Positions 21,720-41,354 of a DNA stretch of 64,000 bases are shown one piece after another. This DNA is from Paragordius varius (lineage: Eukaryota; Animalia; Nematomorpha): NCBI GenBank assembly GCA_964247055.1, contig OZ176055.1, positions 2,480,001-2,544,000 of the forward strand, given 5' to 3'. Both the position numbers and the translations under genes were made by a program. Numbering within the stretch: the stretch's first letter is position 1; each line of letters opens with the position of its first letter. The notes beneath the pieces are model-generated. The model made no database searches. It was given only the letters and a program-made list of their open reading frames with translations, and was not told where the DNA came from.

Positions 21720-24250
21720 AACCGGCAGACCCCTATTCATAGACCTATGGAAAAAGCACTGAGTTAAATTCTTTGCCTTTATAGGGCAAATATTTGGAAT
21801 CATCTTTGATACCATCGTCTCATGGGTTATTTGAAAAAATACCTCAACAGTAAACAATCGTATATGATGGCGAATTTATAGGGCAAACGACTAATAAAAA
21901 ACGCCAGACTTTAATTTTTACCTTGTTACGGGTAATATCTCAAGCATTTAATGAGCTCATATGGCTTTATAAATTTTCCGTAATTTTGGTCCAAAACAAC
22001 GCAATTCGCAGTTTTTGGCGGGTGACTTTTACCTAGAGGCAAACGTAAAAAAAGCGTTTGGCAAAATTTTTGCCTTATATGGGGAATATCTGGAATTATC
22101 ATGGCTTCATGTTCTTATTAGTCTCAGAGGTTTCTAAAATTTGGCTCCAAAGGCATGCCGTTTCGATATGATATGCAGTTTTACGGTAGCCGTCTAACCA
22201 GGGAAGAAACAAAAAACGCTCGAAAAAAATCCATGCCTTAATTTGGCTAATACCTGGAATCATTGATTCCATATGCTCTCGTGGGATTTTCGAATAATTG
22301 CCTCAAAACCAAAAAATCATTCTATCGTGGCGCATTTTTTAGGGCAAGGGCCAAACTAATCTAAATTAAATTAAACCGCTCTACTTAAATTTTTGCCTTT
22401 TTACGGGTACAAGCCCTTATTTAACTCATATGACCATATAAGTTTTCTAAAATTTGCCTCTAAAGTGACGCTGTATCGATATGTGGCGCAATTATAAACG
22501 GGTAGTCCCCTACCCAGAGGCCAATATAAAAAAGACATTCGATAAAAATTGCCATTATAGGGGTATACGGGGATTCATCATCCAATACTTGTGTTCTAGT
22601 TTTTGGAACAATGGCTTCAAAACTAAATGATTCAATAATAGCGCATTTGTTAGGGCGTTAAGGGCCTAATTAACGGCCAATTTATAAAATCGGCCCCACT
22701 TAACTTTTTGCCTTTTTACGGGTAATATTTCAGGCCTTATTAAACTTATGTGGCCTGATTTCTGAAAAATAACTTCTAAAAAACGCAATTTTGATATGGT
22801 AGCGCAGCTGTTGGCGGGTAGCTCCCAACCCAAAGGCTGATACAAAAATACATTCGATAAAATTTCCATTATAGGGGTATACCTGAAATCATCATTTATT
22901 TATGTTCTTAATAAATTACGAAAATTGCTTCAAAACTAAAAAATCATTCTATAATGGCGCATTCAGGGCTAAAGCATAATTAACGGCTAATTTAAAAAAC
23001 CGCACTATCTAAATATTTAGATTGATAAGGGTAATATTTAAAGCACCTATTGAACTCATATAGCCTGATAGGTTTTCTGAATAGCCCCAAAAGCACGCTA
23101 TTTCGGACGAAGCAATTTTTAGCGGGTACTTAGCAGCCAATATAAAAAACTCACGACTAAAGTTGTTGACTTTTAACAGAAAATACCTGGGTCCTCATTA
23201 AATTATTACGGTCACCTTGAAAAAAAATAGATTTAAAGGGCCTAAATTAAAAAGCGAGCCGACTATGTTCGACGCAATCAAAAAAAGCAAAGCAAAATTA
23301 TATTTTTAATTAAAAGGCCTAACACGTTTTCCGGAAAATTGTCTCAAAGACAAGTTTTTGTGGACTTCTGTTTTCAAAAAACCCGTTTTTTACACGGTGT
23401 GGGCCCGAACTGGGGGCCTAATTCAAAAAAGGGCCCAGCTATTGTCGGGGCATTTATTAATTATTAATTTTTTCGACATTTGGATTTGAATGGGTCTACC
23501 GGTTTCCGGAAACAGATCAAAAAGCCAGAAAATTTTATTTTATAAATTATATAGATGACCATAAATAATGTTTTATTTATCCATATATTTTTTTAGAACC
23601 TATACATATGATAGATAAATTAATAATAAAACAATAAGCTAAAACGATTTTATGTTTAGAATCAATAAAGTCTAATTCATTTGATGTTTCGTTAAAATAT
23701 TGAGATAGACAATTATATTTGAAATGAGCATAATATATTTTTGATTTATAAGCAATGTTATGCGGCACGAGTTTTAAAAAAAATCACATAGTCTCATATT
23801 CTGAAATTTGGCTCCAAAGGCATGCTGTATCGATAGGATGGCGCAGTTGTAAGCGGGTAGCCCCTATCCAGAGGCCAATTTTAAAATGTGATTAGATAAA
23901 AAAATTTCCCTTTACACCAGGAATCATCATTCAATCCCAATAGTTTATGGAAGAATGGCCCCAAAACTAAATTATATTTCAATGATAGCGCATTTTCAGG
24001 GAGTAAAGGGCCTATTTAACGGCTAATCGAAAAATCCGATCAACTAAAAGTTTTGACTTTTTACGGGTAATATGTTAAGCAGATATTGAACTCATATTGC
24101 CTGATAGGTTTTTTGAAATTTAGCCACAAAAGCACGCTATTTCGATATGCTCGGGTAACTCCTTACTCAGCAGTATCATCAAAGAAACGCTTGACTAAAA
24201 TTTTTGCCTTTTAACAGGGAATAGGTGTAATCCTTATTGAATTTTTACGG
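21720..24250. repeat. Degenerate ~155-bp tandem satellite with alternating subunits; related pieces at ~20070-20400 and ~36350-36780
   Basis: The anchor aaaatttttgcctt recurs at about 21766, 21911, 22063, 22225, 22387, 22544, 22702, 22859, 23012 and 23160 (spacing 145-162 bp). gcgggtag..ccctacccagagg occurs roughly every second unit. Confidence 0.8.
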
Positions 24251-24660
24251 TTCATACCTTAGCGAAATATAGATTTAAAAAATTATTTCTGTGGTCTTTG
24301 TTTTTATGGAAAAAATGGTATATTACGGAGGTAGCGGGTAAAAAGAGGGCTTGAATTAAAAAAGAGAGCCAACTATGTTCGGCGCAATCGAAAATAAGTT
24401 AAAGAAAATCATATTTGAAATTAAATAATGGGACACGTTTTCCGGAAAATTGTCTCACACGATTTTTGTGGACTTCCGTTTTTTAAAAAACTCGTTGTTC
24501 ACACGGGGTGGGCCCAAACTGGGGGCCTATTTCGAAAAAAGGGCGAAGCTATTGTCGGGGCATTCATTAATGATTATATTTTTTCGATATTTGGATTAGA
24601 ATGGGTCTACCGTTTTTCCGGAAACAGTTCACAAAGCCACCACATTCCATTTTTATAAAT
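23170..24660 (-). mobile_element. Helitron-family modules (same family as 27838-29059), duplicated at ~35790-37210
   Basis: Reverse-complement matches to the ~450-530 bp 5' module (aaaaaagggcgaagctattgtcggggcatttattaatg..acagatcacaaagcc..ttttataaatatatagat). 23240-24660 is colinear with 35830-37205. Confidence 0.75.
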
Positions 24661-25780: not shown

Positions 25781-26098
25781 GGTCAAACCCCCTTTTTTGG
25801 AAATGGGGGTTAAAATAAAACCCTAGTGGAGAATAAAACTTATAAAAATAAGCCTTTAATTTCCTTAATCTTATATCTATCAATAAGGATACGAAATAAT
25901 TATCAGAGATTTAAATTACAATATTCACAATTTTACTCGCTCATTCACATTATTGTTGGTTTGCTAATACAGTATTGTGTATTTCAAAACAAAGTTTTGC
26001 CTAATAATTTTTGTTTATATTAAGTTTTTTGTAATATAGTAATTTAGATATTTTTTAGATAATTTATTTTTAACTTTTTATATTGAACATAATTATAA

Positions 26099-29000
26099 TT
26101 AGTCTTTTCCCTGATATGTTGGCGGAATTGATGAGTCTAGATGGCTTTTGCTCAGGTAAGGAATAATTTCGTCTGCTGAATCTGTTAGTTAAGTATTAAA
26201 ATATAATCATCCACATTGTTTTGAATAAAATTAAAAATGTATTTCTTTGTTATAGGCGTAAAATACTAAATGTTTTAGCATATCAATAAATGCTAAAATC
26301 ACCTACAATACAACTATTTTCGCAGTAGATAATATGATAGTATAAATATTATAATAAATCTTTCATTTAAATTACTTTAATTTTCAATCTTTATTTTTAG
26401 AATCAAAACTAATTGTATTAGAATTTGACCATTTTGCTAATTTAAATATTTCAACACTATATTTGTTATTTTTGTTTGAGTCAATGAATAAAGAGTATGA
26501 CTAAATTCAAAAGTCAAAAATGAAAATGAAATTTTATATATAGTTTAAACATACCACTCGGTATGAGTTCTGAATTTTCAATTGCTCCTGCATTAGCTTG
26601 GCATGTGGCGGTTTTTTTCTTGTTTGTTTTGTTTTTGCAACTCCGAAAAAAAGCTGGTATGAATTTTTTTTCGCTGACTATGCTTTACATTTTGATCATC
26701 TGTGTCATTATTCAATAGAATATTCTGATCCGAAGGAGTTGGGATGGCGGTTTTGGTGGAGGTTTGGTTTTTAAGGGAAAATGTATGAAACTGTGAATTT
26801 AACTTTATAGTTTCTTTGAGCGAGTAAACCTTTTTTCCGACCGTTGATTGGGCTTTACCGATCAAATCGAAACCATCCTGTGTAGAGTGAGAATTGGCGG
26901 GTAACGAGGGAAGTTCTAAGGGGTTGGTCACTACAAACAAATACGGTAAAAATTAAATTTATCACGAGACAAAACTTTCAAAAATTATGAGTTTATTTAA
27001 CTTAAAAAACTAAAAGTAATTTTTTAGAATATCATATTTTTCAATCCTCCATTCAAACTTCCTTGATTTTAATTCCCTATTTGTGGAATCATAACTAGTT
27101 ATGTAGGGATTTGACCGTTTTAGTTTTATTATTTAGTTAAGTGTTTCATCATACTATTTAATATTTTTGTTTGAGTCAATAAATAAAGAGTATGACTAAA
27201 TTCAAAAGTCAAAAATAAAATGAAATTTTATATTATATAGTTTAAACATACCACTCGGTATGAGTTCTGAATTTTCAATTTGTCCTGCATTAGCTTGGCA
27301 TGTGGCGATTTTTTTCTTGTTTGTTTTGTTTTTGCAACTCCGAAAAAAAGCTGGTAGACTGAATTTTTTTCGCTTATGCTTTACATTTTGATCTTCTGTG
27401 TGATTATTAAATAGAATATCCTGATCCGAAGGAGTTGGGATGGCGGTTTGGGTGGTGGTTTGGTTGTTTTGCGGGGGGAATGTAATAAACTGTGAATTTA
27501 ACTTTTTAGTTTCTTTGAGCGAGTAAACCTTTTTTCCGACCGTTGATTGTCCGTTACCGATTAAATCGAAACCATCCTGTGTAGAGTGAGAATTAGCGGG
27601 TAATAAGGGAAGTTCAAAGGGGTTGGTCACTACAAACAAATACGGTTAAATTTATCACGAGACAAAACTTTCAAAATTTTTATTTAACTTACAAGACTAA
27701 AAGAAATTTTTTAGAATATCATATTTTTCCATCACTCATCAAACTTCCTTGATTTTAATTTCCTATTTGTGGAATCATAACTAGTTATGTTGGGATTTAA
27801 CCATTTTAGTTTTATTATTTAATTAAATATTTCATCATCTATATATTTATAAAAATGGAAAATGCTGGCTTTGTGATCTGGTACAGGAAAACCGGTAGAC
27901 CCATTCAAATCCAAACTTCGAAAAAATATAATCATTAATAAATGCCCCGACAATAGCTTCGCCCTTTTTTTCAAATAGGCCCCCAGTTCGGGCCTACCCC
28001 GTGTGAAAAACGGGTTTTTTGAAAACAGAAGTCCACAAAAATCGTGTCTTTGAGACAATTTTTCGGAAAACGTGTTGGACCATTCAATTTCAAATATGAT
28101 TTTTGTTTACTTATTTTCAATTGTGCTAAACATAGTCGAACCACTTTTTTGATTTAGGCCCTCTTTTTACCCGCTCCCCCCGTAAAATGCCACCTTTTTT
28201 AAAAAACAAAGTCCACAAAAATAATTTTTTAAATCGATTTTTCGCCCTAGGTATGAGACCGTAAAAATTCAATAAAGATTCCACGTATTCCATGTTAAAA
28301 GGCAAAAATTTTAGTCCACCGTTAATTTGATGATAGCTGCTGGGTAAGGAGCTACCCGCTAAAAACTGATTTTTCATATAACTTTGTGATCTGTTTCCGG
28401 AAAACCGGTGAAGCCATTCGAATCCAAACATCGAAAAAATATAATCATTAATGAATGCCCCGACAATAGCTTCGCCCTTTTTTGGAATTAGGTCCCCAGT
28501 TTGGGCCCACCCCGTGTGAAAAATGGGTTGAGTCAATTTTTTTGGAGAACGTGTTGGACCATTCAATTTCTATTATGATTTTTGTTTACTTATTTTCGAT
28601 TGCGCTAAACATAGTCGAGCCACATTTTTGATTTTAGCCCTCTTTTTACCCGCTCTCCCCGTAAAATGCCATTTTTTTCAAAAAAAATCCACAAAAATAA
28701 TTTTTTGATTGTATTTTTTTGCTCAAGGTATGAGACTCTAAAAATTCGAGAAGGTTTTTTCGTATTGCCTGTTAAAAGGCAATAATTTTAGTCAAGTGTT
28801 TCTTTGATGATAATGCTGAGTAAGGAGTATCTATCATACGTATAAATATTTTTTTAAATCTATTTTTCCCTCAAGTAAACAATCAATGTATGAATGCACC
28901 GTATTATAATTCCTATGAGATCATAGCTATTAAATAATGTTTCGAAATAATCCACATATGTGGATCATTTTATTGTCCCTTTTTTCAAATAACCCCCCCC

Positions 29001-31832
29001 CCCCCCCAGAAGTCCGAAGGACTTCCTCTGGCTGCGTAGCAGCACGAGATTTACGCCAGTACTATTTTATATTTTTGTTTGAGTCAATAAATAAAGAGTA
29101 TGATTAAATTTGATCTAGAATAAAAACTAACTTTTATATTATATAGTTTAATCATACCACTTGATAAGAGTTCCGAGTTTTCGATTGCTACTGCATTAGT
29201 TAGGCAAGTGGTGGTTTTTTTCTTGTTTGTTTTGTTTTTGCAACTCCGAAAAAGAGCTGTTAGACTAAATTTTTTTTGCTGATTATTTTCATTTTGATCT
29301 TCTGTTTCATTATTCAATAGAATGTCCTGACTCGAAGTAGTTGGGATGGCCGTTTTGGTGGTGGTTTGGTTGTTTTGCGGGGGGAATGTAATAAACTGTG
29401 GGTCAAACTTTTTATTTTCTTTGAGTGAGGATACCTTTTTTCCAACCGTTGATTGGTGGCTATCGCCGATCAGATCAAGGCCATCCTCTAAATTAAGTTT
29501 TGAAGAGGGGGGTGGGTGTAATGAGAAGAGTTCGGAGGGATTTGTAACTACAAACAGGTAAAGATTAAATTTGTGAAGCGATAAAACATTAAAAAATTTT
29601 TATAAGAATTTTGTTTCCATTAACTAAAACTAAAAATAATTTAAGTTATAATAAAATCATAACCCACCGTTATTATAAATTCTAATTTAACATTATATGT
29701 TAAAAATAAATAATATCTAAATCCGGCTCCTTGTAATTGACATCAAAAGGATTTGTTGAATAATGTTTCCCTTCATTTCCGATTACAAAAATAGCAGTTA
29801 TATAATGTTTATTTAGTTACATAAGTATTTGATCAAATTAAATTTTTAATGATTAACTCAATGTAAGCTCGACCAACATCCATTAGCTTGAAAATATTTT
29901 TTTAAATATGTTATGTACTTTTTCGATTTAAAAATGTTATTTATTCATTATGGAAATAAAAATACCTGAAGACTCGGACGGTTTATCAGAAGGATTTTCC
30001 GGAGGATTGACTAGTATTTTTGTATCTGATTGGCTATAAAATTTATAAACACATTCTGAAATTTCCTTAAGAATTAAACACAAGTAGTTTAAACCTATTT
30101 AGAGTTCGATAAAAACAAATTTTATCCAATTTCAACATCATATATGTATTACTGATGGTAAGACATATCATTTCATAAATCCAAATAACCTATTAAACAA
30201 CTCGAAAAATTAATCTTACCTTGAGTCCTCCTGTAATTCTTCCATCCTAACTCTTAAAAATATAAAACCGCTGCAAAAATGTTTATCACTCTTTCCGGAT
30301 TTAAGAACATATCTATTTTCCATTTCTGATTTACTAATAAGCTCAGTTAAATTAATTGATGTTGAGGCTGTGATATGTTGTACATTTTTTGATTTCCTAT
30401 TGAATAATTGCCAATGCTTTGGTTTGGCTTCCTACATTCAAAATATTAAATTAAAATAAAGGTTGTATTAATAATACCCTTCATGCTTATAAAGAAAGGC
30501 CAAATATGATTTTTGTTTTAAATTTTGGGATATAATTATTTTATCATTCATAAACAAAAGAGAGCAGTGGTACTAACCGCGGCCCACGGGTCACATGTGG
30601 CTATAAAAGTGCTTTATTATGGCTTTAAATTAATAATTTTTTTATAATTGGGTGCGTTCAGCATATTGAATTTTCCGTTGATTCGGTCAATTATAGAATT
30701 TTAATTTATCTGTAAAATCTGATTTTACATTGAAATTTTTGCTTCGATATTGATCATTCACATCTGACCTTATATATTCCAGTTAAAAAATATTAAAATA
30801 TGAATAAAGTTATCCGTATATCATATCGAGGCGGCATATTCAAAAACAAAGTGCATCAAGTGACATAGGATACGCCTTTTCTATTAACCAGATTTGTTTA
30901 AAATATTTTATAGTCTATATATAAATATATATTCATTCTGTGGAAGATTTCATAACAAAACATTTGTGTAAAACCCGCAAAAACCTTAAAGGCGTGTAAA
31001 ACTCTAAGAATATATTATCCGGAATAAAACAACCCATATTAATTAAAACTAGTTATAAAATATGTTTAAGCGTGGGGTAGCGTGTTAGTTGCTACAATGA
31101 AATCATTTCCAATTTAAAAGAATGTACGAGTAAATAAAAAACTTCTTCACTAGATACATCCTTTTACATAATTTATTTTAGTGTATTGATATTGGTGCTT
31201 ACCGTGAGGACTTGAAGATACCATTTGTGCTTCTTAAAAACGTGCGGATTTTTCTTATCACGTTTCAATTTTATGTCAAAAGTTAATTTTTCCTGGAAAG
31301 AAGAACGAAGGGCTGTGCGAGACTCAGAAGGCTCACAATATTTCCACTATATAAATGATAATTGTACAGTTAAAAATAAAACATAAATAGAAACATTATT
31401 TTTGTAAAAGACGACCATAATTTTTTAACTCTTTGATAAATAGTCCATATTAAAAAATAGGGAGAGTAAATTGTTACACTTAATTTATAATTATTTGAAT
31501 TAAATAGTTTATGTAGCAAAGCTCATATGGTTGTCTTTATGAAAAAATATGTTTTTAAGTTATACGTTTTGTCTATGTAATATCAATTTATATTTTGCAT
31601 GTTAGATAATAAAGTATGGCTTTCACATAAGTAGTTGATTAAAAAAAATATTTTACCGGAGTCGCGATTTTCCGTTCTTTCCTTTGCCAACTTAAACAAA
31701 TTTTGTCAGGCAGACTAAAAAATTAAATGCAAAACCTTACCAATCGTGATCATACACTAACATTAATCCTTGATAAAAAATTGTGAAACGATATAATACA
31801 GAATCTGTGCGTTTTTTAATGTTACGCCACAT
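26099..31832 (-). CDS. EHBP1-like NT-C2 domain protein with a triplicated exon (exons 31832-31741, 31714-31657, 31346-31203, 30431-30220, 30033-29966, [29547-29158 / 27629-27252 / 26930-26555], 26181-26099)
   Basis: The spliced N-terminus MWRNIKKRTDSVLYRFTIFYQGLMLVYDHDCLPDKICLSWQRKERK..FQEKLTFDIKLKRD..FKKHKWYLQVLTE..TASTSINLTELIS matches the recalled EHBP1 NT-C2 pattern (SVWKRLQR..KFQF..YQELM..WQPDKL.V.W.RR.RR; FEDKEWTF; LATSSINM). All junctions are GT-AG and phase-consistent. Confidence 0.85.
26420..29600. repeat. Tandem triplication of a ~685-bp exon-plus-intron unit; the third unit is interrupted by the Helitron
   Basis: Unit starts near 26420, 27104 and 27790; the ORF-track proteins at 26593, 27202 and 29084 are paralogous. 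Confidence 0.9.
27838..29059 (+). mobile_element. Non-autonomous Helitron, complete copy
   Basis: Inserted between A and T with no TSD; 5' TC; 3' hairpin GCTGC-GTA-GCAGC (29031-29043) 16 nt before a CCAG end (a CTAG variant). The empty site ttcatc-AT-actatt is preserved in the paralogous tandem unit near 27145-27158. Confidence 0.8.
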
Positions 31833-32754
31833 AGTAGTATGAATTCTATTTTTTTCCTAAAAGATGGTGTGGTTAATTGGAAATTTTGGGTTCGATTGAA
31901 TTGCCAATATCAAGATCACCAATTAGAAGTTTGTAGGGATATATAATTAAAGTCAGGCAGTGATCACACTCAAATAGAGTGGAATATAATACAAAAAATC
32001 ATTATCAAATTTGTTTATTTTTGTGATGGTAATTTTTATACTTATGATTATTAAAATAATTAATGAGATTATCGCTTAAACAATCAAAAGTAATATTATT
32101 AAATAGCTCATAAGATATACAGTCTTGTTGTAGTTACGTCACAAAATTTAAACTAATATTTCTTTGCTAAAATATTATTAAATCAATAAATTTTGCCATA
32201 TGGTATTTAAATAATATTTTAAAATAAAATCTTAATATTAATAAAATTTAAATTTATTGTTGTTGCAAAACTTATATTAAATTTGTTTTTAACCCAATAT
32301 ATTTTTTAAGTTATATATTTACCACCTGTTTTATTTGGAAAATGCTCTCAATTTATTAAGGTAAGTGGTAAATAGCGAAAGTAAAGTATTACTTTAAGAA
32401 TTTGTATTGAGTCAAATGCTTATTGGCTAATATTAATTAATTATATAAAAGTTATGTTTTTATAGTTATAACTTGTATAATAAATAATAGAATTGCAAAT
32501 TTGAATAAAAAACTCAATATATGATTTATAACGTATTATTAAAGTAAGGAAAAAGTTATATTTTTATTCATATATAATCAATTTTTTTGCCATCGAGTTT
32601 TTTGCATTCTAATATTTTTATCATTTTAACAGTAATTCTGAATTAAAAATTATGATTCTACCATTTTTTTTACATTTCGATTCGAATTGGTCTAAATACC
32701 CCAGACTAGAATTAAATAAATATTTTTTAGAAACTACTGAAGGTAACCGGTTTG

Positions 32755-35789: not shown

Positions 35790-37210
35790 AATTTTAAACA
35801 GGCCTGGGATAACTACCCCAGTTTGAACACAAATAAAAAAGGCAGCCGACTATGTTCGGCGCAATCATAAAAAGCAAAGTAATATTTTAAATTAAAATCC
35901 CTAACAAGTTTTCCGGAAAATTGTCTCAAAGACAAGATTTTTGTGGACTTGTGTTTTCAAAAAAAAACCGTTTTATACACGAGGTGGGCACGAACTGGGG
36001 GCCTAATTCAAAAAAGGGCGAAGCTATTGTCGGGGCATATATTAATGATTATATTTTTTCGACATTTGGATTTGAATGGTTTTACCGGTTTTCCGGAAAC
36101 AGATCATACATTTTTATAAATATATAGATTACCATAAATAATGTTTTATTATCCATATATTCTTTTAATATCCAATACATAGGATAGATAAATAAACAAT
36201 AAACTAATACGATTTTATGTTTAAAATCAATAAAGTTTGATTGATCATTTGATTGTCTCGTTTAAATATTGAGATAGACAATTTTATTTGAAATGAGCAT
36301 AATATATTTTTGATATTAATTTTGTTATGCGGCACGAAGTTTTAAAATGATTCACAGTCTCATACTTATGATGGCGCAGTTGTAGGCGGGTAGCCCCCTA
36401 CCCAGAGGCCATAAAAATGTGATTAGATAAAGTTTTCCGCCTTTATACCTGAAATCATCATTCATTCCTAATAGTTAATGGAAGAATGGCTTCAAAACTA
36501 AATAATAGTTCAATGATAGCGCATTTTTTAGGGATTAAAGGGCGGGCTTACTAACGGCTAATTCGAAAAATCCGCTCGACTTAAATTTTTGACTTTTTAC
36601 GGGTAATACTTTAGGCAGCTATTGTACTGATATGGTCTGATAGGTTTTCTGATATTTAGCCTCAAAAGCGCGTTATTTCGATACGACGGGTGAGTTTTTC
36701 GCGGGTAGCTCCTTACCCAGCAGCTATCATCAAAGAAACGCTTGACTAAATTTTTGCCTTTTAACAGGGAATACGTGAAATCTTTATTGAATTTTTGAGG
36801 TTTCATACCTTGGGCGAAACAAAAAATTATTTTTGTGGACTTAGTTTTTTTGTAAAAAATGGCATTTTACGGGGGGGGGGGGGGGGGGGGTAAAAAGAGG
36901 GCCTAAATAAAAAAGGCGAGCCGACTATGTTCGGCGCAATCAAAAATAAGTAAAAAAATCATATATGAAATCGAAAGTTCCTCTCCGGAAAATTGTCTCA
37001 TAGACAAGATTTTTGGGGACTTCTGTTTTCAAAAAAACCCGTTTTTACGGGGTGGGCCCGAACTGAGGCCTAATTCAAAAAAGGGCGAAGCTATTGTCGG
37101 GGCATTTATTAATGATTATATTTTTTCGATGTTTGGATTTGATTGGGTCTACCCGTTTTCCTGTACCAGATCACAAAGCCAGCATTTTCCATTTTTATAA
37201 ATATAAAGAT
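35790..37210 (-). mobile_element. Helitron-family/satellite block, copy of 23240-24660
   Basis: Colinear similarity includes the spacer atagattaccataaataatg..gagatagacaatt and the satellite units. Confidence 0.75.
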
Positions 37211-37306: not shown

Positions 37307-40300
37307 TTATTTTGCATCAAATTTTTGAAAAAAACTCCACAAATTATTTATAACATAGGCATTTTCATTATCCTTTTGTATTATGATGTCCGGCATATTA
37401 ACATTATCATAAAATGTAGAGCTATTTGTTCCTTTTGATAATATGAAGGGGAATGTGTGTGCAAATTTTTCTGTAACCTAATGCATTTTTAAAGTAAGAT
37501 AATTAAAAAAATGCCAACATTTATTAAATGACCTAATAAATTACTAAATACAGTGAATTAGGAAAATTATTAAAATATTTAAAGATTTATCCAAAAAATA
37601 CTGTCAATACCAATTTTTTCAATATTTTATTATATTAAAATATGCATTATATCAAATAAAATTATTCCTTTAAACCCGAAAAATTCATAATTGTGAAATT
37701 TCATTGATAAAAAAATATTTTAGATTAATACTAAAAAAAATATAAACCATAGCATAATATTCCATCCATTTTTCCGGTTGTTTAGAATCAAACATAATTG
37801 TATCCATACAAAGTTTGGCGTTGTGAAACCTTTCTAAATCCCATTTACTATTTAAAATAAATAAAAAGTTATTTAAAATATTACAAATCAAAAATAATTT
37901 AATTGAAAATAATTATCAAATTTTTAAAATGTTAAAATTAAAAAATAAAATTAAAAATAACTTTGGTCGTAAAAGGGTTAAGCATGAATCCAGTGCATAA
38001 AACATATGGTATAACATCCATCTAATGATTTCGTTTTGATTCCCATTATCTACAGTTGTTGTGGTGCTATTTATTAATTTTTTTAGGTGAGAAAATGTTT
38101 CACGCTCTAATACTTGGTAATAACATAAATTAGTCGAGTTTAAAGGAAATATACAGTGTTCAAATGGTGACACATTTAATAGGGAAAAATTTTGCAAAGC
38201 TTTTTGACAAACGTCATTGATAAGCGTTGTAAAATATTGCGATTGAATACGTTCCAATCTTGTAAGCATGGCATAAATGTCAAAATTTTGTTGAGCCTTT
38301 TTAGGTTGGGTGGTTATGGTGTTAAAGAAATCTAATATTCCTTGTTTTGATAACAAGGACTCCAAATCTATTAGATAATATGATAATTAATATACAATTT
38401 TTTGCAATAAAATCGTTTTTTAAAAAAATTAAAGAGAAAAGTTGTTTTTAAATGAAAAGATATGTCAAATGGGTAATTGCTCTGTAATTTTCTGGATATC
38501 ACTTTTAATTTTAATGAAATATGTTGTAATCTATGTATCATTATTTTATAATTATTATAAAAAGGGGATAATTTTCTTTTTTACAATTAAATTATGTACA
38601 TTAGATTAATATTTTCTTGAATTAAAAAGACAATGCTCTATTAACAAAAAAAGCTACAATTGTTACCTATAACATATTCACATTTTTTGAAAATAAATGA
38701 ACAGTTTATGATAAATATCTCTCACCTTTTTTACAAACTTCAGGTAAAAATGTTAAATCATATTGATTCACATTAGGTATAATTTTTTTGGATGATTCCG
38801 TAATATTTGATGGATTTAGTTTAGGATCACAACATACATGACATTTGCAAGTGAAATAATATGATTGCCGTAGAGATGTTTGACGCATAATATATGGGGC
38901 CAAATATTGCGTATAATTTATAAAGATCTATGAAATAAATGCAAAAAAAGAATAAAAAATAGAATAAGGTAGACGGGCGATACATCCTTATTTTACGGGT
39001 ATTAATAATTATTATTTGATTAACTCTAGAGGGTCATATGTTGACTTTTTCATGCATTTTTTTTTTCATCTCTAATCAATTCCTTCCAATTATATAATCA
39101 AAGAATCAATAATTCCATTAATATTTACGGGATGTCGCTTTTGGAAAACAATTAATTAAAGCAGCTCAGAGCTGATAAATTTGCAATGAAACAAAATTCA
39201 TTTTGTCTAAGAGTCCGTTTTTCAGTTTTAAAATGGATTATTCTATTGCTAATGGTTCTGAATCGGGTTGCATTTTTATTAAAAAAATTTATAATCCCTT
39301 GCCGCAAATATGTAAATATATAAGCAAAAACCATGTATACGCGTTCAAATCTAAAATAAACTTTTATTAATCAAATAAAGAAGAAATTAAAAAAAAATAC
39401 CAATATGCCGAACCCTGGAAAATATTAATATTCATCAATTTGAAAAATATAAACCTTTTGATCAATCTCTTGAGAATTATCATCTTTGCTAAGTTCAATG
39501 TTTGAATTGAGCGTTATTCGTAAGTAGGGCCCAACGAAATCCCCAATTGCATTTGGATCACACGAATGATTAAAATAGGAACCTCTTACATTGATACAAA
39601 AATAAGGATATAAACTGGCTAGCATAAATTGTATTTATTAAACACGTGTGAGTGATTAATTAAATTTTATAAAAAAATTATAAGAAATATTAAAAGAAAT
39701 ATTTGAGTATCCTTTTTTAACCGTTTAGTTTCCGGTAAAAATTCGCAAAAACGGTAAAAATATATTTTAATTTTTTAAAACAAATCTTATTTTATTATAT
39801 AAAATGATTTAAACAATAAAATTATCAGTAAATAAAAAAATGGAAGCGTACTTACAATTATTAAGCCAAAAAACAATGAATCCGGTACCAAATTATTTTT
39901 GCGAAAAATTCCTTTAATATGAAACCATAATAAAATTGATTAATTCTTGTAATAAGTGTATGGTAAATAAATATAATTTGTATCAATTTTTAACTTATGG
40001 CATAATTTAAGCATACTTGATGTATATACCAATAGCAATGGGCTGTAAATCTTTGTCTGATATAGTGTATGTATTAATTAGTATCTAAGTTTTAAAAAGA
40101 TTAATTTAATAATTTCTTAACTCAAGGGAAAATATTATAAGATATCGTTTGTCATTGATCAAAATTAATGCAGTTAATTAATATTTGAGAAATTTAAGTT
40201 TTATCTAAACCAGAATAAAACGGACTGTTAAGTTGTTAAATTATGTCAAAATATATTGATAAAAAATTAGTAAAATTTGATGTAATAATTAAATAAAATT

Positions 40301-40933
40301 TTATTTTTATAACCTTTCCGTACAAACTTGGGAGGATGGAAACATATTTTTTAAATATATTGTAGGGTAAAAGTTTGCGAACAGCCATAATGTATATATC
40401 CATACATTCCTTTGTTTTTCCTTTTATATCATGCAGATGATCCATTAAAGAATCCAAGGCCCGATTATTAAATTTTGGACATACTATTTCAAGTTCTGGT
40501 GCAATGTAAGCATTTTGATTAATTGTGTCATGCTTTTCCTATGGAGATTTTTATTGTTAAATAATTATATAAAATATTAACGTTTAATTCTTGTTGTAAT
40601 AAAAGTTTTAATAAAATTAATAACCAAATAGTAGATTATACGACAGATAAGATGTACAGGAGTCGGTATAAGGTATCGATATTGCAAATCTACTTTGATA
40701 AAATTTTTACATTCATGTTTATGATGATCGTTCCAGTCATTTGCCTATAGTTTATGAAGATTAAGTACTTGACACGCTTTAGAACAATAAGCTGTGGTAA
40801 GGCAAGAATTGCACTTAAAAACTTTTTTCCTCTCTAGACAGTAAACACAATGGGTTTTGTAACATTCTTTTTGTAACACGTAGGCAATTGGCTTTTCAAT
40901 TAATACAATTGTTCCAATTGGTAATTTTATCAT
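37307..40933 (-). CDS. SMYD-family SET and MYND domain lysine methyltransferase (exons 40933-40769, 40744-40625, 40538-40314, 40084-40017, 39584-39455, 38927-38726, 38367-~37963, ~37850-37750, 37477-37307)
   Basis: MYND CVYC..CNSC..YCSKACQ|ANDWNDHHKHEC; SET INTYTI..IAIGIY, YFNHSCDPN, IFINY; post-SET YYFTCKCHVC. Junctions are phase-consistent. Confidence 0.92.
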
Positions 40934-40994
40934 CTCATTACAGGCCTTTCGTAAATTTTATAAATTTAAAAATTCAAATTTCACCTTTTCAAGT

Positions 40995-41354
40995 ATGTTA
41001 CTACCAGAGCAAAAAGAGGTACTGGAATGTAAGGAAAATGAAAACAATTTATTTTATATCAATCTTAGAAAAACGATTGCACAAGCAAATGAAAGAATCG
41101 ATAATCTCACCAATATACAAAATTTGTCTATGAAATCCGTTCAAAATGCTACCCAACTATTAAATCGGGTTAAGGAGTTTATACCAAAGGTTAAACAAGC
41201 AAATATGGAATTAAATAATTCTAATTTGGATTCATCATTCGACATAATTGATATGAAAAATGAAACAAAAACTATTACTAAAGATATTAAAGAACCTTAC
41301 ATAAATATGGATTTATATTTTGAAGATGTAACCAGAACTACTGATGCCAAATAA
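40995..41354 (+). CDS. NOPCHAP1: NOP protein chaperone 1-like (C12orf45/DUF4598)
   Basis: Intronless 119-aa ORF. LLNRVKEFIPKVKQANMEL..SFDII..EPYINMDL matches the recalled family signature LL.RV..FLP.M..AN..L..FNIE..IEMD. Confidence 0.65.
   Translation: MLLPEQKEVLECKENENNLFYINLRKTIAQANERIDNLTNIQNLSMKSVQNATQLLNRVKEFIPKVKQANMELNNSNLDSSFDIIDMKNETKTITKDIKEPYINMDLYFEDVTRTTDAK

Follow-up and report, generated by a model that had tools for sequence, protein, structure and literature searches.

We examined a window of 64,000 nucleotides (nt) from the horsehair worm Paragordius varius (phylum Nematomorpha; GenBank assembly GCA_964247055.1, contig OZ176055.1, positions 2,480,001 to 2,544,000), in which a gene on the minus strand, modelled from an ATG at 31832 to a stop at 26099, contains three tandem copies of a single exon. 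Positions are those of the window, the exons all lie on its minus strand, and slashes in splice sites mark the boundaries between exon and intron. Copy A (29547-29158) has 390 nt and opens with VTNPSE, copy B (27629-27252) has 378 nt and opens with VTNPFE, and copy C (26930-26555) has 376 nt and opens with VTNPLE. The reading frame is open throughout A and B, of which B is the sole copy with an NPF motif, and is shifted in C. The three copies have in common an acceptor tttgtag/T and a donor AGTG/gtatg, and their VTNP starts take in one G carried over from exon 5 (30033-29966), all three copies being phase 1. With its length of 376 nt copy C is not symmetric in effect, though it is phase 1 at both ends. 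Coordinates, lengths, splice-site strings, phase and opening peptides were all found in the sequence as the initial annotation of this stretch had given them.

The homology of the copies goes far beyond chance. Using blastn, A and B align at 84% identity over 330 nt (E 9e-102) and the units containing B and C at 89% over 728 nt. The repeated unit comprises the exon and approximately 310 nt of intron, or about 0.7 kilobases (kb), and is represented by repeat families D5, D7, D11 and D12. The distance from copy to copy is 1906 nt between A and B versus 697 nt between B and C. No fourth copy was found by blastn in the 64-kb window, and the locus is a tandem exon triplication, with three copies only, whose splice sites and phase have been kept. 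As it stands, this is an ordinary instance of a well-known type of event, tandem exon duplication, a form of internal gene duplication that is reportedly a source of alternative or repeated exons. The features it has in common with that type are adjoining homologous exons of near-equal length, the same phase, kept sites and a co-duplicated intron. It differs in that one copy is broken, that the lengths of A and B are multiples of three, so that mutual exclusivity is not enforced by the frame, and that the use of the copies is predicted from sequence only.

The break in copy C maps to a run of eight A residues at 26671-26664 (T8 on the plus strand), one base longer than the A7 run at this place in B. 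The frame shifts at this run and meets a TAA at 26595-26593, 38 nt before the donor. Past the shift, the other frame of C still reads ..FFRSCKNKTNKKKTATCQANAGAIENSELIPS, nearly matching B, which argues that the break is young. The initial annotation had described C as out of frame by one extra A; this is indeed the only frame-breaking indel, but a total of four indel events separate C from B.

The gene model around the copies was assembled by eye from the minus-strand reading, and its introns are predicted. Exon 1 (31832-31741; GC 30%) is open from the ATG at 31832-31830 (MWRNIKKRTDSVLYRF...) to a donor TG/gtaagg. Intron 1 (31740-31715; gtaagg...ttttag) is a putative GT-AG intron of 26 nt, predicted because its removal joins exons 1 and 2 in frame, whereas reading through it meets a TAA at once. 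Exon 2 (31714-31657; ..LPDKICLSWQRKERKIATP) completes with exon 1 a stretch of 150 nt, or 50 codons. It is followed by exon 3 (31346-31203; 144 nt, 48 codons), which lies between an acceptor tatatag/ and a donor ACG/gtaagc, and by exon 4 (30431-30220), which would encode the C-terminal half of an NT-C2-like domain. Exon 5 (QSDTKILVNPPENPSDKPSESS) contains NPPE and NPSD and has a phase 1 donor, exons 4 and 5 together amounting to 280 nt and leaving phase 1. The terminal exon (26181-26099; ..DSADEIIPYLSKSHLDSSIPPTYQGKD and the stop) has a phase 1 acceptor and is open to its TAA, with no GT before the stop, and past it there is an AATAAA at 26068-26063. Phases are consistent throughout the model. 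GC content is 30-43% in the exons and 20-28% in the introns, and beside the 26-nt intron 1 the remaining introns of the gene measure 186-1528 nt. The predicted product has 348 amino acids with A alone and 474 with A and B. The main practical use of the locus lies in annotation, since the 26-nt intron and the broken copy C, like the gene as a whole, are easily miscalled.

The two intact copies trace back to an old duplication. From Nei-Gojobori counts, the comparison of A and B gives 0.46 synonymous (dS) and 0.16 non-synonymous (dN) substitutions per site, a dN/dS of 0.35. The two copies are separated by two indels, of 9 and 3 nt, both multiples of three, and by no stop. Their identity is 81% in the exon versus 57% in the upstream 200 nt of intron, which are barely alignable. 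Together, the dN/dS of 0.35 and the frame-keeping indels suggest that, for most of the time since they separated, both A and the B/C ancestor remained coding, as a B lineage drifting freely since the split would be expected to give a dN/dS of at least 0.5 and would have kept its frame across indels only by luck. Amid 19% divergence, A and B also have two perfectly identical blocks of 44 and 39 nt, without silent differences, one of which (TTTTTCGGAGTTGCAAAAACAAAACAAACAAGAAAAAAA) is identical in all three copies. The longest block has a P of 0.004, and the sum of both blocks was reached in 0 of 20,000 shuffles. Such blocks suggest either gene conversion or constraint at the level of RNA.

The duplication that separated B and C is much more recent (dS 0.078, dN/dS about 1.2). 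The exons of these two copies are 90.7% identical, compared with 93.6% for the intron sequence upstream of them and 92% for that downstream. To assign the changes to one copy or the other, differences between B and C were polarised with A as outgroup. Since the split, B has acquired 7 non-synonymous changes, 1 synonymous change and no indel; C has acquired 8 non-synonymous and 2 synonymous changes together with all four indel events (-3, +3, +1 and -3). Seven of the 10 substitutions in C, as well as a 3-nt deletion, sit in codons 41-58, within the perfectly shared 44-nt block of A and B. The dN/dS comparison that the initial annotation had proposed thus comes out differently for the two pairs: constraint is visible between A and B, and none is evident between B and C. 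Most likely, C arose recently from B and is now a decaying pseudo-exon. The decay is indicated by the four indels, by the cluster of changes in the best-kept A-B block and by the presence of the extra A in sequencing reads, described below. Of C, the initial annotation had said that it was either a sequencing error or a poison exon; the decay of a young duplicate fits better, given the extra A in the reads, the three further indels and the clustered changes.

Read support was obtained from Logan contigs of four runs over positions 26000-31900, all resembling short-read DNA. At the T run, for which the initial annotation had suggested a check in raw reads, the contigs agree with the assembly: record 3 of run X1 covers 26610-26797 with one mismatch and no gap and so carries A8. 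Because this short-read contig spans the run without a gap, the extra A is most likely not an assembly error. Contigs specific to individual copies (at least 95% identity) were found for C (X1 record 3, X4 records 26 and 27), for the intron between B and C (X1 record 4), for A (X1 record 5, X3 record 19) and for the region upstream of B (X3 record 17). Two of the samples behind these contigs belong to one study and a third belongs to another. No contig among the four runs bridges the whole unit, so the order of the copies has no independent confirmation from reads. The depth of X1 record 3 is about half that of the contigs next to it. The region 26000-31900 as a whole is rich in variants and strongly polymorphic: single-base differences and small indels are numerous in the contigs and are frequently seen at about half depth, among them an insertion of 10 nt behind 30106 and one of TAT behind 26536. 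Run X3, which carries another species label (organism B, separate study), matches parts of the locus at 95% or more, and the two labels may stand for the same or very close species.

Concerning the usage of the exons, the frame is maintained whether A, B, both or neither are included, and C cannot be read through. The symmetric phase permits frame-neutral use of A and B, their lengths of 390 and 378 nt being multiples of three. Introns of 1528 nt (A-B) and 321 nt (B-C) separate the copies, and every splice site is of the GT-AG type. No splice joints were found in the four runs covering the locus, all of which resemble DNA contigs. Looking for docking and selector pairing in the RNA returned only low-complexity AT-rich pairs, 70-85% complementary, and a weak site may exist. 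In this anatomy, none of the mechanisms that could forbid joint inclusion (frame, short intron, incompatible spliceosomes, RNA pairing) was found. With nothing enforcing exclusion, including both A and B, or using them as cassettes, appears more likely than strict exclusion. Judged from the sequence, we rank joint or cassette use first and strict exclusion second, and keep the use of A alone as a serious rival, given the lack of recent constraint on B.

The family to which the gene belongs was addressed through its predicted N-terminal half. Exon 4 matches the Pfam profile PF10358 (NT-C2) over profile positions 75-140 of 143, with an E of 0.023 and 14.8 bits, below the cut-off of 25.2 bits. 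The position of the match in the profile agrees with the approximately 98 residues encoded upstream. Exons 1 and 3, searched singly in Pfam, gave no match, a sequence search of PDB with exon 4 returned nothing, and a search of NCBIfam returned nothing relevant. The nearest ESM Atlas clusters of exon 4 are C2 domains, at 0.85-0.88, which serve as leads only. EHBP1, the protein named by the initial annotation, has an architecture of NT-C2, NPF motifs, CH domain, bMERB domain and CaaX box (PMC7442826). By eye inspection of minus-strand frames of at least 45 codons, from 26100 down to a Gypsy element at about 17300, and with no profile search, neither CH nor bMERB was recognised, and small exons could escape such a check. 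The terminal exon ends in ..PPTYQGKD and the stop, without a CaaX box. The gene is therefore not borne out as EHBP1, the weak NT-C2 match being the one domain seen, and CH, bMERB and CaaX not. What the locus would have in common with EHBP1 is a putative NT-C2 domain at the extreme N-terminus and, after it, a tail that is probably disordered and includes an NPF-type motif; it differs in length (1231 amino acids in EHBP1 versus approximately 350-470 here) and in the number of NPF motifs (five versus one here). That single NPF between NT-C2 and the end of the tail belongs to copy B, and NPPE, NPSD, NPSE and NPLE lie close by. Proteins of the EEIG1/FAM102 type, the other branch of PF10358, likewise combine an NT-C2 head with a low-complexity tail and no further domain. 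The N-terminal sequence, judged by eye only, looks more like EHBP1 than like EEIG1/FAM102. The predicted product would be a short NT-C2-headed protein with the general layout of an NT-C2-only protein. It would correspond at most to the N-terminal third of an EHBP1, being at most EHBP1-like and not a full EHBP1.

The initial annotation had further proposed that the three copies switch a ligand of EH domains. The background to this proposal is confirmed: EHBP1 binds EH domains through NPF motifs, of which the human protein has five (PMC7442826), and the EH domains of EHD proteins prefer NPF followed by acidic residues, typically in clusters such as NPFEEEEED (PMC13282721). EHBP1 of fly and nematode is without NPF motifs (PMC3255984), so the EH link cannot be assumed in this clade. 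Copy B reads NPFELPLL, in which the NPF core is present and is followed by a single E, with no acidic cluster. The difference between S, F and L at this position is one codon (TCC, TTT and TTA in A, B and C), and the ancestral residue is ambiguous by parsimony, as three changes are required under any ancestor. Motifs of the form NPx[DE] cross the junction of exon 5 with the copies, VNPPENPSDKPSESS continuing into VTNP[S/F/L]E, and NPPE, NPSD and NP[S/F/L]E thus fall within about 35 residues. There are 3 independent NPx[DE] motifs versus 0.16 expected by shuffling (P 3e-4), for a motif that was defined after seeing it. This clustering weakly suggests that the tail may resemble a motif carrier. 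For the peptide of the exon no confident fold was predicted (predicted local distance difference test score 50, predicted template modelling score 0.12), from an alignment of only two rows. A profile search of 1.84 billion representatives returned no relatives of the A+B exon, and the window's own protein was likewise absent; the library is thus probably without this genome, and the blank result says little. The sole profile match (E 9e-5) was to a T-rich mucin-like repeat protein and was rejected as unrelated. On these grounds the switching of an EH ligand is speculation, weakly motivated by the sequence.

The reading we prefer, and to which we give about half of our belief, is that of two tandem duplications of the 0.7-kb unit, with A and B plausibly functional and used by joint or cassette inclusion and with C decaying. 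More specifically, an old duplication of a symmetric phase 1 exon with about 310 nt of intron would have produced A and the common precursor of the other two copies, both staying coding. A recent duplication would then have given rise to B and C, after which C would have gained the +1 homopolymer slip, three more indels and changes clustered in the best-kept block. The spliceosome could include A and B together, lengthening the tail by one module, or skip either of them, and C, if spliced in, would end the protein early. If A and B are both used, the locus would represent a clean, datable case in which exon duplication added a module to a protein tail, while a third copy is seen in the course of decay. 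Several points weigh against this reading. No run on record as RNA matches the locus, and runs of the same species label that were guessed to be RNA matched none of its words. The A8 run is covered by one haplotype contig, and an A7 allele may also exist. Gene conversion in the 44- and 39-nt blocks may blur both the dating and the dN/dS. The NT-C2 call hangs on one exon whose E of 0.023 falls under the Pfam cut-off. Finally, B shows no sign of constraint since the B/C split, with its 7:1 ratio of changes and about as many substitutions as C, the exon identity of B and C is not above that of their introns (90.7% versus 92-94%), and B could already be unused. These last observations favour a rival in which only A is used, B and C being silent duplicates within one long last intron and B not yet having been hit by a stop or frameshift. 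We consider this unlikely, as the A-B dN/dS and the indels in multiples of three point to a B lineage that spent most of its history as coding sequence. Moreover, B retains both blocks identical with A and intact splice sites, and the four recent indels all fell in C and none in B (P about 0.06 if they were equally likely in both).

In line with the proposal of the initial annotation, A and B, and perhaps C as well, could be alternative exons, used either in mutual exclusion or as regulated cassettes, with the NPF of B as the on state and NPS or NPL as the off state, and could so tune binding to proteins of the EHD/RME-1 type. This proposal would draw on the equal phase and splice sites of the copies and on the frame, which is kept whichever of A and B are included. 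The TNPF of copy B agrees with the S/T-NPF core, the motif lies within the NPx[DE] cluster, and it is followed by an acidic residue of the kind that favours EHD binding (PMC13282721). We nevertheless find this proposal rather improbable. There is one acidic residue after the NPF, against the clusters of known EHD partners (PMC13282721), EHBP1 of fly and nematode does without NPF altogether (PMC3255984), and in a tail with so much N, P and F a lone NPF can be a chance occurrence. Nor can the ancestral residue be polarised, no frame, steric or RNA-pairing mechanism for exclusivity was found, and no RNA run matched the locus. Should A and B be used alternatively after all, the locus would show how the choice of exon can switch a short linear motif, here NPF, in a phylum for which functional data are almost absent. 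Copy C might also still be used if the 25-nt GT..AG segment at 26678-26654 (GTCAGC...ACCAG), which spans the indel patch and the A8 run, were removed as a tiny intron, restoring the frame. Of the GT..AG segments of 18-60 nt in C, it alone leaves the exon fully open when removed, and the gene already has a predicted intron of 26 nt. However, the donor GTCAGC is weak, no T-rich tract precedes the AG, one such candidate is about the chance expectation in an exon of 376 nt, no RNA run matched the locus and C shows the other signs of decay, all of which make this highly improbable. That the triplication or the extra A is an artefact of assembly we find scarcely credible: no single contig bridges the whole unit and homopolymer errors are common in long-read assemblies, but copy-specific short-read contigs of at least 95% identity, from two samples and two studies, support A, C and the flanks of B, and X1 record 3 carries A8 without a gap. 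The copies differ by 9-19% and so cannot be collapsed alleles. Beyond the preferred reading of joint or cassette inclusion, it is conceivable, as a long shot, that horsehair worms have lineage-specific short adaptors, with an EHBP1-type NT-C2 head, no CH or bMERB domain, and a tail that varies by an amplified phase 1 exon of the TNPx-acidic type. Splicing and copy turnover would then set the number of NPF ligands, and the EH link would be one that is lost in EHBP1 of fly and nematode.

A neighbouring gene on the minus strand, at approximately 37900-41000, combines a MYND-type zinc finger (..CVYCLERKKVFKCNSCLTTAYCSKACQ) with a SET motif (..NHSCDPN) and looks by eye like a methyltransferase of the SMYD type. 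A scan of this gene yielded candidate introns of 24 nt, for example at 40768-40745, but no firm set. Within the A-B intron, positions 27850-29045 are occupied by two tandem units of about 500 nt each, belonging to an interspersed repeat of very high copy number, with a read depth in the millions versus hundreds beside it. The insertion of this repeat accounts for the wide spacing of A and B. A tract of 13 G residues lies beside the repeat units, at about 29000. Other copies of the same interspersed repeat are found at 24152-24655, 36693-37197, 23237-23541 and 35847-36106, on both strands.

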